DNA of 64,000 bases from Podarcis filfolensis (taxonomy: Eukaryota), in NCBI GenBank assembly GCA_964270895.1, contig OZ185444.1. One strand, given 5' to 3'. Positions 22,540 to 50,899 of this stretch are shown one piece after another (positions within the stretch are counted from its first letter, which is position 1; every line of letters begins with the position of its first letter). The notes beneath the pieces were generated by a model that saw only the letters and a list, made by a program, of their open reading frames with translations, did not search any database and was not told the DNA's origin. The translations under genes were made by a program, and so were the position numbers.

Positions 22540-24471
22540 GGGCTGACTTTCTGTTTTGCGGCGAACCAGGCAAGTCATCCTCTTGGAAGCTCCGGTGCCC
22601 AGTAGGGATCCCAGACAGAGATTAATGGGGGGGGTAAAGGGCATGCCTCCCCTAACCCATGGGTCGACAAACTAAGGCCCGTGGGCCAGATCAGGCCCAA
22701 TTGCCTTCTGGATCCAGCCTGCGGACGGTCCGGGAATTGCCGTGTGGTTCACCAGCGTGCATGTTCTTTCCCTCTCGCTCACATGGCGGCAGCGGCACCT
22801 CCTCCCTCCCTCCCTCCCTCCCTCCCTCCTCCTGGCTTCTCCCCGCCCTGCCTAGAGGAGGAAGGGGGCTGGACTTTGTTGGTGACAGCAGCAAGAGCAG
22901 CAGCAGCGCTGGAGTAGCCACCATTTTAAGCAGCCCCTCTCCGGAGCCCTTTCACATGCGGCTCATCATCCCTCCGCTGCTGCAGCTGACTCAAGGTCGT
23001 CCATTAATGTGTTTTTGTGTTGTTGTTTTTTGGCCTGTGAGCAGGGGTGAAAATCCCCATCTCCCAGATGAAAAGGCTTCATCCAAGGACAGCCCCAACA
23101 AGCTACCGTGGTGAGCTGTGGAATACCTTTGAATTCGGACATACCGTATTTAGCAAGCGAAGAGGCACCCCCCTGAAAAGATCCTGATTTATGCTGCAGG
23201 AGAAAATTATCTGTTTGGAAAGGTTTGGAAAGAATGAAAGACACTAATTTCTGCTTTGTTTGAACAGTGGAAGGAGGGGAGGCAATATTTTAAGTCATGG
23301 AGTTTTTTTTTCAGAATCTGCGTTATATATCCTCCCCTAAAGCAATGGAATGTAAAGTTTTCAGGAAGAGTGGACTTTAAAGATACCTCTTTGTGATGGA
23401 TTTATTTTATAACTAAGGACTTTGCCTGAGCCTAACAACCTTGAAGGACTTTTGAGGGATTTTGACCACCCCTTGGAACTTTGTATTGTGAAATTAAAAT
23501 AATAAAGAAAAGATTGGTAACAACTGGATTGACTGTCTGTTAAGCACTCGGAAGACAATAAACTGTGGAGCTGGATGTAAACAGAGGATCGGTAGAATGA
23601 ACTGCAGGAAGATTTATTAGTTTAGGGGGAAGGATGGAGAGGAAACATGGATTTTGTTGAGATTACATCACACACACCCCTTGAAGCTTGAAGCTGGAAA
23701 TGAAAACAGTGAAAGCGACAGGATGGGCCACAGGGTATACCATCTTGATGACTTCTGAGACTTTCAGACAGAGAAGAAGAGAGATGGATTATGTTTCTTT
23801 ATTAATGATTTGTTAATGAGCTGTTTGTATGTAAAATTGAGGATTAAATTTGGCGAAAAGTGAGGGGTGGGTGACGCTGGGAGATTGGCAGTGTGTGAGA
23901 GGGGGAATGTGTATTATATATTTATAGGGAAATTCTAGGGGTTTCATTTTCACCCTCTGCACACAGCACCAGTGAGGCTGGAGCCAGATGTCAGACAGCA
24001 ATGTTCAAGGCCATGTTAGGGAGGAATGTGTGTATGATGTCTGGGAGGAAGCAAGATCTCTCGTTCTCAGGCAAAGTGTTGCTCAAGAGGTATCAGAAGG
24101 AAATGTTTGAAAATTGAGGAATGACTATTATAGATAGATTACAGAGGATTTACTCTACTCAACTATTTTGAGGACAGGTTATAACTATGTATAACAGCCA
24201 TAGGAGAAATTGGTAATTGAACAGGTGATGTGTATGGAGAAGGGGTGAGTGTATTTTGAAATGATAGGGAAGTTATTTTATTGGGAGCAGAAAAGGAGGG
24301 AGGAAAATAGAGGGGACATCTGGGGGTGAGGCGGGAAGTCAGCTTTTAAATTTGCATTAATTTGGTGACAATTTGTTTAAAATATGGGAAATAAATAAAA
24401 ATAATTGGCAAAAAAAGAAAATTCAGAAAAGGAAGAAGAAGAAGAAGAAGAAGAAGAAGAAGAAGAAGAAG

Positions 24472-33967: not shown

Positions 33968-34839
33968 TACAGTGGTACCTTGGTTCCCAAACAGCTTAGC
34001 TGTTGAACAAATCGGCTCCCAAACGCTGCAAAGCTGGAAGTAAGTGTTCTGGACTTCTGGGTTGGCGCCTCCGGTAATGGCGGAGCTCCTCCGATCGGGA
34101 GGAACTTGCTCCGTGAAAAGCAGGGTCTAACCGCCACGGCGAAGGCGGAGACCCATAGAAATCACAGGCGGGAGAAGCCTGTGAACTTGAGATTCGGCTG
34201 GCACCTTTTGCGCCTTCCCTACTCGCGGGGAAACCCTGTTTTGGGGATCCGGAGCGACGTGGGGTGAGTGGCGCAGTGCTTTGAATCGACTGCTTCTTTC
34301 ACGGAGTGAAGCCGCATTGCTGCTGCCAGAGAGCGCTGACTTTTTCCTGTGGACAATTGGACCTTAAACAACTACCCGTGAGTAGATTGGAAAATTTGGA
34401 TCTTCAAATATTTTAATTTGGCAACAAAGCGGGAAGGCTCTAAACAGGAAGTCCGCCTTCCGCTTTTGTAAACAGACTGAAGCAAAGACGTTACAAACTA
34501 AAGTCTCTGAAAGTTTTTGATAAAGGATTAAAATTCCATCGGTTAAAAATACAAAACCCCCTTGGAAGCAGGAGAAGAGGGGGGAAGTCGTGAACCTAGT
34601 GGGAACCTGCAGGAGAGAGTGAAAAGCAAACTACCACTGCTCTGAACCTGGGAATGGTCTGCCTGATGACGTTTGGGGAAGGTTCATTGACAGAACGGAT
34701 CTGACAGTTACTTAAAATTGGAAAGATACTGTTTCCACTGATCTCGTCTGAGTTTATCAAAGGGAGGAAAAAAATAACTGAAAATCGAAACTGTTTTTGT
34801 GCTTGAAAGAATTGATACAAGTTGAGACTGTTTCCCTCT

Positions 34840-35928
34840 GGTGGCCACCAGGGGGCGCATTGGAAGATGGCCGACAATAACATCTCTCTGACCCACACGA
34901 GGTAATTTAGGGGCTGCTATGGGAAGTATGCAGCCTTCCCTCCCCACCAGGGTGTGGTGGGGTGCTGCCTGGCCAGCGGTGTTCACAAGGCACCCCCTGA
35001 TCCAAGAGATGGGGGTGCTGAACACTTGGCACGAGCCCTCGGTGAAGTCAGCTCTTCCTGACGCCGATTCCGATTAGCGCGTGCTGGTTGCTTCAGCCCG
35101 GAATTATAATTGGAAACAGATGAATTGGAATTGAGGCTGAAGCACATATATCAAGTAAAGCTCGACGATAAGGCTGCTGAATAATGGATCTCTGCGACCG
35201 AGAGCGACGGACGGATAAGTAAATCTTTTGATGTGTCGTCACCAAGAGACTGTACGTTTGGAACAAAGGGGGGGTGGAGGAAAAACTTTTTCTTTTCCCT
35301 ATATGATGTGACAAAAATAACCCTCCACCCCAGAAAGAAAGAAATAAGATCGTTGCGTCTTTTAAGATTCATAAGCAGAAGTTTAAGAACTGTGTGGGAG
35401 ATGGAAAATAATTGGTGAACGCTGAGGAATTTTTATGACACAGTTAAAAAATGGCGTCTCGCCAAGACAGGCTGCTGGAGAAAAAAAGAGATGGGGGAGG
35501 AGATTCAGGAATGTTGGAGAAGAGAAGGAGTATGGAACTGAAAGCTTGACCTGACAGAGCCCCCTGATCTATTTGATTTATTTGGCTAGCCTGGAAAATA
35601 AAAGGACAATGAAGAACCCACACAGAGAAGCCAGCTTTTAGTCTGCTTGTGAGAATCATCAGAGATCGCAAAGAAAGGAACGTATGATAACAAACAAGAT
35701 GAAGAAAATACAAAGGACTATCTGGATTGAACTGGATAGAACTGATTAATTAATGCAGCAAAATAAGTGATGTCTGGACTTATCCGGAACTTTGGACTCG
35801 TGCGGAGCTTGATATATGGGTACACCCAAAAAATTTAAAATTTGGCTGTATAATTTGGAACCAATGTGATTTGAATAATGTGATGTGATTGGCCTGTTAA
35901 TAAAAATTATTAAAAAAAGAGAGAGAGA
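34840..35928 (+). mobile_element. 1.1-kb non-autonomous L1-like element nested in the previous element
   Basis: Perfect 16-bp TSD GAGACTGTTTCCCTCT (34824-34839 and 35929-35944); 5' GGGGGCGCATTGGAAGATGGCCGA; CpG-rich leader; AATAAA, A-run and (GA)n tail; no long ORF. Confidence 0.85.
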
Positions 35929-36043
35929 GAGACTGTTTCCCTCTAGAGGGAGTATGTGAAACTGTTACAGGAGTGTAACAGGGTAAGCTCCAGCTGCAAG
36001 ATAAAGTTTCTGAGAATCAGAGATTGACCTTGGACTATTCAAA

Positions 36044-36706
36044 ATGCTGATAGGAGAAGGTATTGTGACTGTATTATATAAGATAAACCATTCACTTGAA
36101 CAGCTGCATAAAAAGGCAGATGACATGATTTCCAAAATTGACAGCCGGGAACAGAAAGTGACCAATTTGAATCAAAAAGCAAGCAACAATACAGAAATAA
36201 TTCAGGACTTGGAACAGGAATATACCTTGGTAGGACAAATGGTGGAGGAAAAGGAGAAAGATGCCGTTGCGAAACCTAAGGTAGTTCAAGCAGGATCCTC
36301 AGTTCTACAGAAGCAAATTGAGGATTATAAATTGAGGCCTTGCATGATTGATTCCAGCAAAAGCCAGATTTTGAGGATTGGACCCTGGCTTGGACTGAAG
36401 AACGAAAGTTGGAAAGATCCCTTTATTCAGGGACCAACTGACTTTTGGGACATGGGTTTGGGCCTGGAGGAGCTTGAAGCTTTGGGGGCCTATGGATTTG
36501 GAGGAATCCTGAAATACGTCCTGAAATACCATATGGACCTTAGTTTCAATTATGGAAACTTGGCTGAGCTGTTCAGAAGGAAGAAAAGTTTTGTTTGGTT
36601 GGAGTTTTCCCGAGATTTGCAGCTGAGCATTAAAGAATATGAAGAAGATCTGCAGAAGGGACTTGGAAAAGAATTAAGAGCCTCGGATATAAGATCTCCA
36701 GGTTGA
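36044..36706 (+). CDS. TE-encoded 220-aa ORF, putative L1 ORF1p-like protein with a predicted N-terminal coiled coil
   Basis: Open frame at the ORF1 position of the 34053-37282 element; heptad-like stretch LYKINHSLEQLHKKADDMISKIDSREQKVTNLNQKASNNTEIIQDLEQEY. Homology of the C-terminal half to ORF1p was not verified. Confidence 0.5.
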   Translation: MLIGEGIVTVLYKINHSLEQLHKKADDMISKIDSREQKVTNLNQKASNNTEIIQDLEQEYTLVGQMVEEKEKDAVAKPKVVQAGSSVLQKQIEDYKLRPCMIDSSKSQILRIGPWLGLKNESWKDPFIQGPTDFWDMGLGLEELEALGAYGFGGILKYVLKYHMDLSFNYGNLAELFRRKKSFVWLEFSRDLQLSIKEYEEDLQKGLGKELRASDIRSPG

Positions 36707-37460
36707 TGGACTATATGGATCTGACGGAAAGGACTGGCAGAATCTGAAACCAGGGAGAAGAGACGGTGGAAGAAGATTGGGAAGTTAAAGTTTATATTTA
36801 GAAATTTTGTAAAATTAATGACTGTTAGAAAAACCGTGGAATTATATCATATGGATTTAGTAGAAATGTTAGAAGAAGTTAAGTATAGATAAGTAATTTA
36901 GTCTTAAAGGGAAATAAGGTTAAAAAAATATGTTATTTACAAGATGATAAAAAACAGAGAAAGATGGAAAGGATTTGCTGAAACAATTAGAAGAACTGGA
37001 ATACAAAAAGGGAGGTGTGAGGAAGTCGAGGAACAAGGAAATGAAGGATAGAATATGGAAAAGGAGAGATGTATTTTAAACTGTTTTTGTTTTAATTTAT
37101 GTGTTTAATCTAATGGGTTTGGGTTGGGTTTTATAATATTTGTATACTGTATTGTATTGTGGTGTTTCTTACTTTTTTTTTTGTTTTTTTTCCTTTCTCT
37201 TTCTTTCTTGTCTTTATTTTTCTTTTTTCTTCTTTTTCTGTAACTTTCAAAAGTAATAAATATTTTTTTTTTTTTTAAAAAAGGAAGTTAGTGTTCTGGT
37301 TTGCGAACTTTTTTTGGAAGCCAAACATCCGACGCAGCTTCCACCTGAGTGCAGAAAGCTCCTGCAGCCAATTGGAAGTCACACCTTGGTTTTCAAATGG
37401 TTTTGGGAGTCAAGCAGACTCCCGGAACAGATTAAGTTCAAGAACCAAGGTACCACCGTA

Positions 37461-42346: not shown

Positions 42347-42864
42347 CACAGAACCATAAAATGGTACAGTTGGAAGGGACCATGAGGGTCATCTAGTCCA
42401 ACCCCCTATAATGCAGGAATCCTGACTGGCTGAGATGACTGGCAGAATCCGTGACCAAGGAAAAGAGACGGTGGAAGAAGATTGGAAGAAATTCAAAACT
42501 TATCTTAAGAACTGTTGTAAAATTAATGAGTGCTAAAATGTTATGGGTAATGTAAAACAGAATTGCAGTGACAAATAATTGGGTAAGAGAAAAAGGATTA
42601 AAGAAAGTGAATTATAAGTAATTGAAATTAGGGGTTGCTGGAAAAGTTTAAAACAGGGATGCAGAAAAGGGAGGTATGGGGAAGTCGTTGAAATAAGGTT
42701 TAAGAAAAAGAGGTTATGAATTTATACGTGTTTGTATGTTTGTTTGTTTGTGTATTGTCAGTTGTGTTGTGTTTTGATATATGTTGGAAAATTAATAAAA
42801 AATTTATTTAAAAAATATATATATATATATAATGCAGGAATCCTGTGCCCAACATGGGGCTCAA
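42347..42864 (-). mobile_element. tRNA-Lys/CR1-tail SINE split by an L1 insertion (42347-42424 and 42846-42864)
   Basis: Joining the two halves gives the reverse complement of the SINE at 5383-5510, truncated inside the tRNA head. Confidence 0.75.
42425..42827 (+). mobile_element. L1 3' end (ORF2 last codons, 3' UTR, A/TA tail), 5'-truncated
   Basis: LAEMTGRIRDQGKETVEEDWKKFKTYLKNCCKINEC*, AATAAA at ~42794; 18-bp TSD TATAATGCAGGAATCCTG (42407-42424 and 42828-42845); homologous to 36730-36800. Confidence 0.9.
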
Positions 42865-49664: not shown

Positions 49665-49968
49665 ATGTCCAAGGGCTTGAAGAAGAAAAGCCACTGGACG
49701 AGCCGAGTCCATGAGTGTGTCATCGTGAGGAGCCAGGAGGGCGGGCTGGGCTTCGAGCTCAAGGGGGGCGCCGAGAACGGGCAGTTCCCGTACCTGGGGG
49801 AGGTCAAGCCCGGCAAGGTGGTCTACGAGAGCGGAGGCAGCAAGTTGGTGCCCGAGGAGCTGCTGCTGGAGGTGAACGAGACCCCCGTGGCCGGGCTCAC
49901 CATCCGGGATGTGCTGGCCGTGATCAAGCACTGCAAGGACCCCATCCGGCTCAAGTGCGTCAAGCAAG
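49665..49968 (+). CDS. MAGI2: MAGI2 coding exon 1 (N-terminal PDZ0 domain of membrane-associated guanylate kinase inverted 2)
   Basis: Translates MSKGLKKKSHWTSRVHECVIVRSQEGGLGFELKGGAENGQFPYLGEVKPGKVVYESGGSKLVPEELLLEVNETPVAGLTIRDVLAVIKHCKDPIRLKCVKQ-G, which matches the vertebrate MAGI2 N-terminus as I recall it (MSKSLKKKSHWTSKVHE...GGAENGQFPYLGEVKPGKV...KHCKDPLRLKCVKQG). In-frame upstream stop TAA at 49527. Ends at a canonical donor CAAG|GTAAGC (phase 1). The ORF-track extension to 50201 is intron read-through. Confidence 0.96.
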
Positions 49969-50899
49969 GTAAGCGCGGGGCGGGCGGGGGGGGGGAGGGG
50001 GTTGGCGGGCGAAGGGCCCGAAGAAGAAGAAGAAGACGGCGGGGCGCGAGACGCGGCAACTTCTCCGCTTCGGGGCAGTTTGGCCGCCGCCGCCGCCCCC
50101 GACCCCCTTCCTTTGGCTGGGGAAGGGGAGGCAGCCGCGGCGGCGGCGCACAGCCTTCCTGGATCGCGCTGCGTGTCTCGTGTGCCGCACGGCAGAATTA
50201 AATGTGCGTCAGCGGCGGAGTGCCTGGAGAGCCGCGGGGAGCGGAGAAAGTTCGGCCGGGCCCGAAGAGGGAGCAGGCCGGCGGGGAAAGGGCTGGGGAG
50301 CGAGGGGTGCGCAGGACGCAAATGTGCAGAATCTGCCCCCCTCCGCCCAAAAAGCGAGTGCTTCTGAGCAAGTGCAGAGCGCCACCTTTTTGCTCAGGAC
50401 AGATGCAGGGCCATCCACACTTACTTGGGAGTAAGCTCTTTTTCTGTCCTCGGTGCGTGGGACTTGCTTCTGAGTAAACAGAAAGGGAAAAGGCTGTAAG
50501 GCTGCCCGCCGCTGCACCGTTACCTGAAAGTGGATCCCGCTGAGGGCTGGGATCTGGCTCTACGAGGAAGGGCAGCATGGATCCAGGGCAGACTTAAGCC
50601 TCAGCACCGAGACTCTCCTCCCCGCCACACACCCATTTTCAGCCCGGGACGCGAGTAGAAGGAAGGCATTCCAGGGCATCTTCTCCTGGCAAGGGGAGCG
50701 GTGGCACCGATGCATGCCGTGGAAGAAAGAGGGAGGGAGGAAGGAAGGAAGGAGGGGGAGAAGTGGGGCTAAACATTATGACAGCTCTGCAAGAACGCGG
50801 CTTCCCTGGAAAGCATCCCCGGTGACTAACCCTCCCGGGGAGTCGTAGTAGCCGCGCCGGGGACCAGCCTGCGCTAAGGCGCCGCAACGTGCCAAGGCG

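Follow-up and report, generated by a model that had tools for sequence, protein, structure and literature searches.

A HAL1-like L1 derivative in the lizard Podarcis filfolensis with a shrunken ORF1p and only a terminal relic of ORF2

Introduction

The ORF2 protein (ORF2p) of L1 retrotransposons shows cis preference, and the half-L1s (HAL1s), so far described only from mammals, are to our knowledge unique among known L1 parasites in encoding their own protein. We analyzed a 64-kb stretch of DNA from the lizard Podarcis filfolensis (64,000 nucleotides of contig OZ185444.1, assembly GCA_964270895.1; here called the window) and describe a HAL1-like variant at positions 34053 to 37282, all features of which lie on the plus strand. 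Where PMC5753468 treats them (citing Smit 1999 and Bao & Jurka 2010), HAL1s are presented as non-autonomous L1 derivatives that encode only ORF1p and that had several origins in mammals. The likely parent of the Podarcis element is a lizard L1. In Anolis, the "clade 1" L1s with long 5' untranslated regions (5' UTRs) have a conserved 5' extremity, GACTTCCGGTG-N8-ATGGCG (Boissinot & Sookdeo 2016, PMC5381506). We read the Podarcis element, with a probability of about 0.7, as a full-length member of a non-autonomous lineage that branched from an L1 of this clade 1 type and has no ORF2.

The element resembles the mammalian HAL1s in having L1 ends and in having kept ORF1 and lost ORF2; it probably also forms a family of its own, presumably amplified through L1 ORF2p acting in trans. 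It differs from them in its lacertid host and in its lizard clade 1-type L1 parent, and judged by host and parent its origin should be independent of theirs. A literature search that paired HAL1 with lizards or squamates returned no description of such an element; Repbase and Dfam lay outside that search, and an uncurated consensus may exist there. With the clade 1 lizard L1s (Anolis L1_AC; PMC5381506) the element shares the 5' motif GACTTCYGG..ATGGCG, a long CpG-rich 5' UTR, an ORF1p-type coiled coil, the C-terminal tail of ORF2 with the 3' UTR, an A-rich sense strand, and target-site duplications (TSDs) of 16 to 17 bp. Unlike those L1s, it has no endonuclease or reverse transcriptase, is 2.1 kb rather than ~6 kb long, and has an ORF1 of 220 rather than 355 to 376 amino acids (aa).

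Results

A short L1-type RNA was inserted as one unit. The element is bracketed by a 17-bp TSD whose left copy, GGAAGTAAGTGTTCTGG at 34036-34052, lies inside a host repeat resembling a short interspersed element (SINE) and whose right copy is GGAAGTTAGTGTTCTGG at 37283-37299; the two agree at 16/17 positions. This confirms what had been proposed in an earlier reading of the window made from its letters alone (the sequence-only reading), and the ~2.1-kb length given there is also right in its coordinates and arithmetic, for removal of a nested 1089-bp retroposon and one copy of its 16-bp TSD leaves 2125 bp. The host repeat also occurs uninterrupted elsewhere, in contigs that skip from about 34049 to about 37309. 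The hallmarks of L1-type target-primed reverse transcription are present, namely, the 17-bp TSD (16/17), an AATAAA signal at 37255-37260, and a short tail of six A's (37277-37282). One and the same TSD thus surrounds an L1-type 5' terminus and a 3' end with a poly(A) signal and tail, which supports retrotransposition as a unit, as the sequence-only reading had also claimed.

The interior of the element holds one intact open reading frame (ORF) of 220 aa at 36044-36706, and no other long ORF was found within the 2125 bp; the ten other long ORFs in the window gave no match to a reverse transcriptase or an endonuclease. ORF2 is absent save for a relic of its last 42 codons at 36702-36828, which is in a frame different from that of the 220-aa ORF and is interrupted by two in-frame stops (36745-36747 and 36799-36801). 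From ~36702 the element aligns with a 5'-truncated L1 3' end elsewhere in the window, at 42425-42830 (BLAST, 80% identity over 113 bp), in which the first 36 codons of the ORF2 tail are open (…LAEMTGRIRDQGKETVEEDWKKFKTYLKNCCKINEC*). An alignment of the two that includes the flanking TSDs reaches the AATAAA with a mean column identity of 73%. The L1-type 3' UTR of the element (36829-37276) contains a pyrimidine-rich stretch and the AATAAA followed by a T run, and it aligns lengthwise with the 3' UTR at 42538-42830.

We used a 31-mer index of sequencing runs, in which parts of the stretch occur in runs labelled as seven organisms (none of the runs listed is recorded as RNA), and compared contigs of four organisms at 85% likeness; every bin was covered. 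Contigs of L1 proper, from other runs, match the element from 36702 or 36704 on and upstream read …CCACCCTGGAAGAATGGCAGATGAA instead. When that side is joined to the element's letters from 36702, the translation is …PTLEEWQMKLMDYMDL…, which we take to be the segment after the cysteine-rich motif at the C terminus of vertebrate L1 ORF2p (compare human …PTMIDWIKKMW…). Word depth was ~20-fold higher at 36637-36755 than in the bins of the ORF, as expected if the tail is common to ordinary L1s. The ORF ends …TCT CCA GGT TGA, where the TGA is the relic's TTG ATG read one base out of frame; the stop codon thus exists because of the deletion junction. Retention of an ORF2 relic that supplies the stop codon is a further difference from the HAL1s. 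The 3' structure had been described beforehand as an ORF2 tip of ~30 codons with a 3' UTR and a tail; the ORF2 C terminus and the L1 3' UTR held up, and the tip proved to be 42 codons long.

Two side observations concern the 3' ends. The L1 copy used for comparison is an ordinary 5'-truncated L1 3' end which, with its 17-bp TSD (ATAATGCAGGAATCCTG), occupies 42408-42847 and has an A6(TA)n tail. A pyrimidine-rich, low-complexity tract of ~70 bp in the 3' UTR of the element (37176-37245) is not in that L1 3' end, and word depth falls to near zero there, probably through a repeat filter.

Relatives share the last residue made by the junction. We found six relatives of the 220-aa ORF on short Logan contigs (P0001, P0003, P0005, P0010, P0024, and the fragment P0004), which are 87 to 215 aa long and 26 to 49% identical; P0024 came from a word-index search with the family alignment, which returned three Logan proteins. 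All six end in …R(D/E)LRASD(L/I/V)R.PG or a near variant at the homologous last residue. Because the six stop at the residue homologous to the last one of the ORF, the comparison supports the ORF1/ORF2 junction as a probable family character and not a local deletion. The relatives are colinear with the 220-aa ORF and do not have the two gaps that separate it from ORF1p (described below), and the family has motifs of its own, such as RDL (where ORF1p has PQGLSF) and LRASD.R.PG. Read most simply, these alignments reflect a single deletion in an ancestor, after which the family evolved separately for a long time. Three more intact 215-aa copies of P0003 lie on separate contigs and differ by 1 to 3 residues, and P0009, a close relative with a frameshift, is on five contigs. 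A chance ORF is ruled out by the relatives.

The sequence specific to the ORF is also multi-copy in four lizard species, as the contig comparison supports. Contigs identical to the element over 36042-36230, 36042-36260, or 36042-36269 had word depths of 2254 (run X1), 123.5 (X4), and 225.6 (X6), compared with ~80 to 130, 10 to 15, and 20 to 25 for single-locus-looking contigs in the same runs, a ratio of ~10 to 25 that is one of word depths, not copy numbers.

The ORF is a cut-down ORF1p. Searched as a single sequence, the 220-aa ORF had no Transposase_22 or L1 RRM match in Pfam at E ≤ 10 (coiled-coil noise only), no phmmer match in the PDB, and no match in the word-index protein search. An exhaustive HMMER search with the ORF returned ten proteins of two kinds, with E values down to 1e-29. 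Two of the matching proteins, P0006 of Podarcis raffonei and P0007 of P. lilfordi, match the N-terminal half of the ORF, and a search with P0007 led to full-length proteins of 355 to 376 aa, including P0014, whose UniRef name is "L1 transposable element RRM domain-containing protein." A profile of these Podarcis proteins matches the human and mouse ORF1p chains 2ykp, 2yko, and 2ldy at E ~1e-3 over ~165 positions of the RRM and the C-terminal domain (CTD), which makes them the ORF1p of lacertid L1; Pfam also misses these full-length sequences. The 220-aa ORF matches P0014 with a BLASTP E value of 2e-19 and is 27% identical to full-length ORF1p, and the profile of the mini-family aligns with the ORF1p profile at an hhalign probability of 98.7%. 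The ORF1p-like protein with a coiled-coil N terminus that the sequence-only reading had seen here is thus confirmed. Of the domain checks that it had proposed, Pfam gave no match, and the profile-profile comparison of the HHpred type gave the match to ORF1p.

Aligned with ORF1p, the ORF spans residues 56 to 325, and its residue 1 is an internal Met at ORF1p position 56. The two are colinear from the coiled coil (~aa 1-95; 36044-36328) to the first RRM strand (…NLRIRAVPE… versus …ILRIGPWLG…) and then through DFWQQDLGEEEFKIVSAFRLG versus DFWDMGLGLEELEALGAYGFG, which leaves an RRM remnant of β1-α1-β2 (~aa 104-154; 36353-36505). About 40 residues of the RRM (β3, α2, and β4) are absent. The start of the CTD is kept (HLLDLRFNYGDLVALLR versus YHMDLSFNYGNLAELFR) in a remnant at ~aa 155-205 (36506-36658), from which ~17 CTD residues are missing; the first ~55 and the last ~25 residues of ORF1p are also gone, the alignment stopping at EDLQK. 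The tail of the 220-aa ORF reads …ELRASDIRSPG. A tblastn search of ORF1p against all frames of the element gave no significant out-of-frame relic of the deleted parts. With two internal gaps and both termini gone, a complete ORF1p (coiled coil, RRM, and CTD) is not encoded, and the loss of all four segments sets the lizard ORF apart from that of the HAL1s. These alignments show a cut-down ORF1p derivative in which the coiled coil is kept, the RRM has lost most of its core, and the CTD is incomplete.

Several related proteins turned up in the same searches. P0006 (XP_053229072.1, annotated as "uncharacterized protein") has an L1 ORF1 N terminus and coiled coil fused to a post-reverse transcriptase segment of ORF2; it is a further case of an L1 with an internal deletion that has been annotated as a gene. 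P0022 and P0023, TRIM39-like gene models of Podarcis muralis with RING and B-box domains (422 to 454 aa), contain a stretch that is 67 to 72% identical to L1 ORF1p over ~55% of the query, either an exonized L1 or an annotation artifact. The coiled coil of the lacertid ORF1p sequences (P0014 to P0021) has its best PDB match in 2wpq, a fragment of a trimeric autotransporter adhesin (E = 8.5e-6), via N-T-x-x-I repeats. This likeness may bear on how lizard ORF1p trimerizes without the RhxxhE motif, a question from PMC5381506.

Open frames point to coding constraint. In the five full-length relatives the frame is open from start codons that fall in one column of the alignment, and all six relatives share the last residue. 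When we simulated neutral substitution of the ORF down to 39% amino acid identity, 0.025% of frames stayed open, with indels uncounted. Open frames among proteins that are 26 to 49% identical would be hard to explain without selection in the source lineages. The database consists of called ORFs only, in which broken copies are invisible, and this is evidence on the source lineages and not on the average copy. The comparison shows that the ORF has been evolving as coding sequence in several sublineages that separated long ago.

The 5' end is of lizard L1 type. The 5' UTR is now in two parts, 34053-34839 and 35945-36043, the second ending at the start codon. The first 200 bp of the element have a G+C content of 60% and an observed/expected CpG ratio of 0.9; the ratio is 0.84 in the next 200 bp and lower further downstream. 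The element begins GACTTCTGGGTTGGCGCCTCCGGTAATGGCG, and its 5' terminus reads GACTTCTGG...ATGGCG at 34052-34082. The pattern GACTTCYGG-N(6-30)-ATGGCG has a single site in the window, at the first base of the element, and none in 100 shuffles. Both the composition and this terminal motif bear out the CpG-rich, L1-like 5' end that had been noted before. Because the spacer to ATGGCG is 14 here and 8 in the Anolis consensus, the match to the clade 1 extremity is a likeness and not an identity. Word depth at 34019-34613 was several-fold above that of the ORF part in 4/4 runs compared, which fits a 5' UTR module common to more abundant L1 families.

A later retroposon, foreign to the family, interrupts the 5' UTR. 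It occupies 34840-35928 (1089 bp) and is flanked by an exact 16-bp TSD, GAGACTGTTTCCCTCT, at 34824-34839 and 35929-35944, so that insert and second TSD copy together take up 34840-35944. It lies in the same orientation as the element, has its own AATAAA (~35901) followed by an A7(GA)n tail, and is multi-copy, with contigs of four species. No ORF of at least 62 aa was found on its sense strand. Its start, GGTGGCCACCAGGGGGCGCATTGG, is loosely like the 5' consensus of lizard clade 2 L1s, GGGNGCTGCGCATGC (PMC5381506).

The state of this copy follows in part from that insertion. Its ORF is intact and, over its first ~220 bp, agrees letter for letter with multi-copy contigs of three species; the copy is therefore young. 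A transcript from its own promoter would probably end at the AATAAA of the nested insert. Because that signal lies upstream of the ORF, the copy is probably crippled, and we infer that it is probably no longer a source element.

Models of the mini-protein give confidence only to the coiled coil. AlphaFold2, run with a seven-sequence alignment, gave a mean pLDDT of 45 and modeled only a helix at residues 3 to 73 with some confidence. We then modeled a 2:1 complex of two copies of P0006 residues 52 to 185 with mini-protein residues 1 to 122 in three runs. The mini-protein as partner scored an ipSAE of 0.68, versus 0.00 for the best control; at least 80% of the contacts were common to the runs, and the partner pLDDT was at least 68. 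The modeled contacts are parallel and in register over mini-protein residues 3 to 88. The ipSAE mark is passed by 51 of 78 solved complexes and by 2 of 108 mismatched pairs, counts that hold only roughly here, and close relatives of a true partner also pass it. The model suggests a coiled coil that has stayed ORF1p-like and could take part in mixed assemblies; we read nothing further into it.

Discussion

We propose that one ancestral deletion fused the 3' part of an L1 ORF1 to the last ~42 codons of ORF2. What would have been left is an L1 promoter and 5' UTR, a small ORF, and an L1 3' UTR with its poly(A) signal. Transcribed from the L1-type 5' UTR promoter and polyadenylated at the signal of L1, the RNA would enter the genome through target-primed reverse transcription with ORF2p supplied in trans by autonomous L1s, which would explain the 16- to 17-bp TSDs and the tail. 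The mini-protein would most likely help to bring this RNA to L1 particles or to ORF2p; it might coat the RNA from which it is made, or it might assemble together with ORF1p through the coiled coil that they share. The present copy would have entered a SINE-like repeat, and a 1.1-kb retroposon would later have hit its 5' UTR in the same orientation.

A more specific form of this proposal is that the mini-ORF1p hitchhikes at the level of protein, having shed RNA binding and using its coiled coil to cotrimerize with the ORF1p of autonomous L1s, so that its own RNA would be tethered to L1 particles and reach ORF2p despite cis preference. We offer it only tentatively and consider it doubtful. If true, it would be a route of trans-mobilization unlike that of Alu, which uses ribosome docking, and unlike that of mammalian HAL1s, which have a complete ORF1p.

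Several points weigh against reading the element as an ORF2-less offshoot mobilized in trans. The word depths support the term "multi-copy" and nothing finer. Among the ~30 contig pieces listed of ~33,000, none bridges 36702. Mobilization by ORF2p in trans is deduced from the hallmarks of insertion. The predicted mini-protein has no RNA-binding core, and its model has no confident fold past the N-terminal helix. The pass of the complex model may mirror only the family likeness of the coiled coils or the likeness to solved complexes.

In one alternative, the family is real and L1 mobilized, and the ORF is baggage that the element could do without; what is copied would be the RNA by itself, with its promoter, 3' UTR, and poly(A), and the frames would be open only because the copies are young. 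The deletions in the RRM core and the CTD, a fold that is confident for one helix only, the fast evolution of the protein (relatives only 26 to 39% identical), and the failure of Pfam to match it are all what such baggage would look like. We nevertheless judge it unlikely, because relatives this diverged are still open with the same last residue, because the neutral simulation left so few frames open (0.025% at 39% identity), and because motifs such as RDL and LRASD.R.PG are conserved as the family's own. The coiled coil enters into a different alternative, that the mini-ORF1p is a dominant negative which poisons ORF1p trimers and is kept since limiting L1 benefits the host or a parasite competing with L1. 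A protein that kept the coiled coil and lost the RNA-binding parts would suit that role, as would the mixed coiled coil in the model (0.68 against 0.00 for the best control), but the ORF sits in a mobile, multi-copy, TSD-flanked element and not at a fixed host locus, and we consider this explanation highly improbable.

Two further alternatives deny that the element belongs to a lineage. Active L1s might repeatedly yield the same short RNA as a by-product, by SpIRE-like splicing (CAG/GT) or by template switching, with every copy a dead end. The junction, CCAG/GTTGATGG, resembles an exon-exon join and shares 1 to 3 bp (microhomology) with L1, which reads ...GAAG(G)TTGATGG, and other internally deleted L1 ORFs such as P0006 exist in Podarcis. 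SpIREs and chimeric L1 ORFs of the P0006 kind (XP_053229072.1) are like the element in having the L1 interior deleted and the 5' end joined to a 3' part. However, they are one-off or recurrent dead ends, whereas the structure of the element is common to relatives that diverged deeply and have conserved motifs of their own, evidence of a lineage that perpetuates itself. A fresh by-product would also sit poorly with an ORF that has only 27% of its aligned residues in common with full-length ORF1p and has lost two further internal segments, and with an ORF2 relic that has decayed to two stops where the L1 copy at 42425 is open. The family motifs and the gap-free colinearity with the relatives argue for long independent evolution of the ORF, and on these grounds recurrence is very unlikely. 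Even less credence attaches to a purely local event, in which the middle of a full-length L1 was deleted after the L1 had entered this site. In its favor, internal L1 deletions are common, and the 64-kb window has no second copy of the element. A junction unique to this locus, a possibility that the sequence-only reading had raised against itself, is contradicted by the six relatives on other contigs that end at the same junction-made residue and by the multi-copy ORF-specific sequence in four species.

Read as an ORF2-less L1 offshoot, the lizard element has only the oligomerization domain of ORF1p recognizably intact and has an ORF that is open across deep divergence. Its deletions would amount to an experiment of nature that asks which part of ORF1p an element needs for getting ORF2p in trans, and it would make L1 cis preference and its bypass testable in a second vertebrate lineage, one with many L1 families active at once. 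Such elements and ORFs are also being annotated as "uncharacterized proteins" of lizards.

Other features of the window

The sequence-only reading had counted an element at 22540 among several independent L1 parasites. The 151-aa ORF there (22659-23111) showed no similarity to L1 ORF1p (hhalign probability, 0.05%) and no Pfam match; it includes a stretch of CCCT repeats. Another ORF, at 49665-50198, contains a PDZ domain (E = 1.9e-6) and is probably a host exon; the stretch in which it lies is rich in G+C and has long ORFs that overlap on the two strands.

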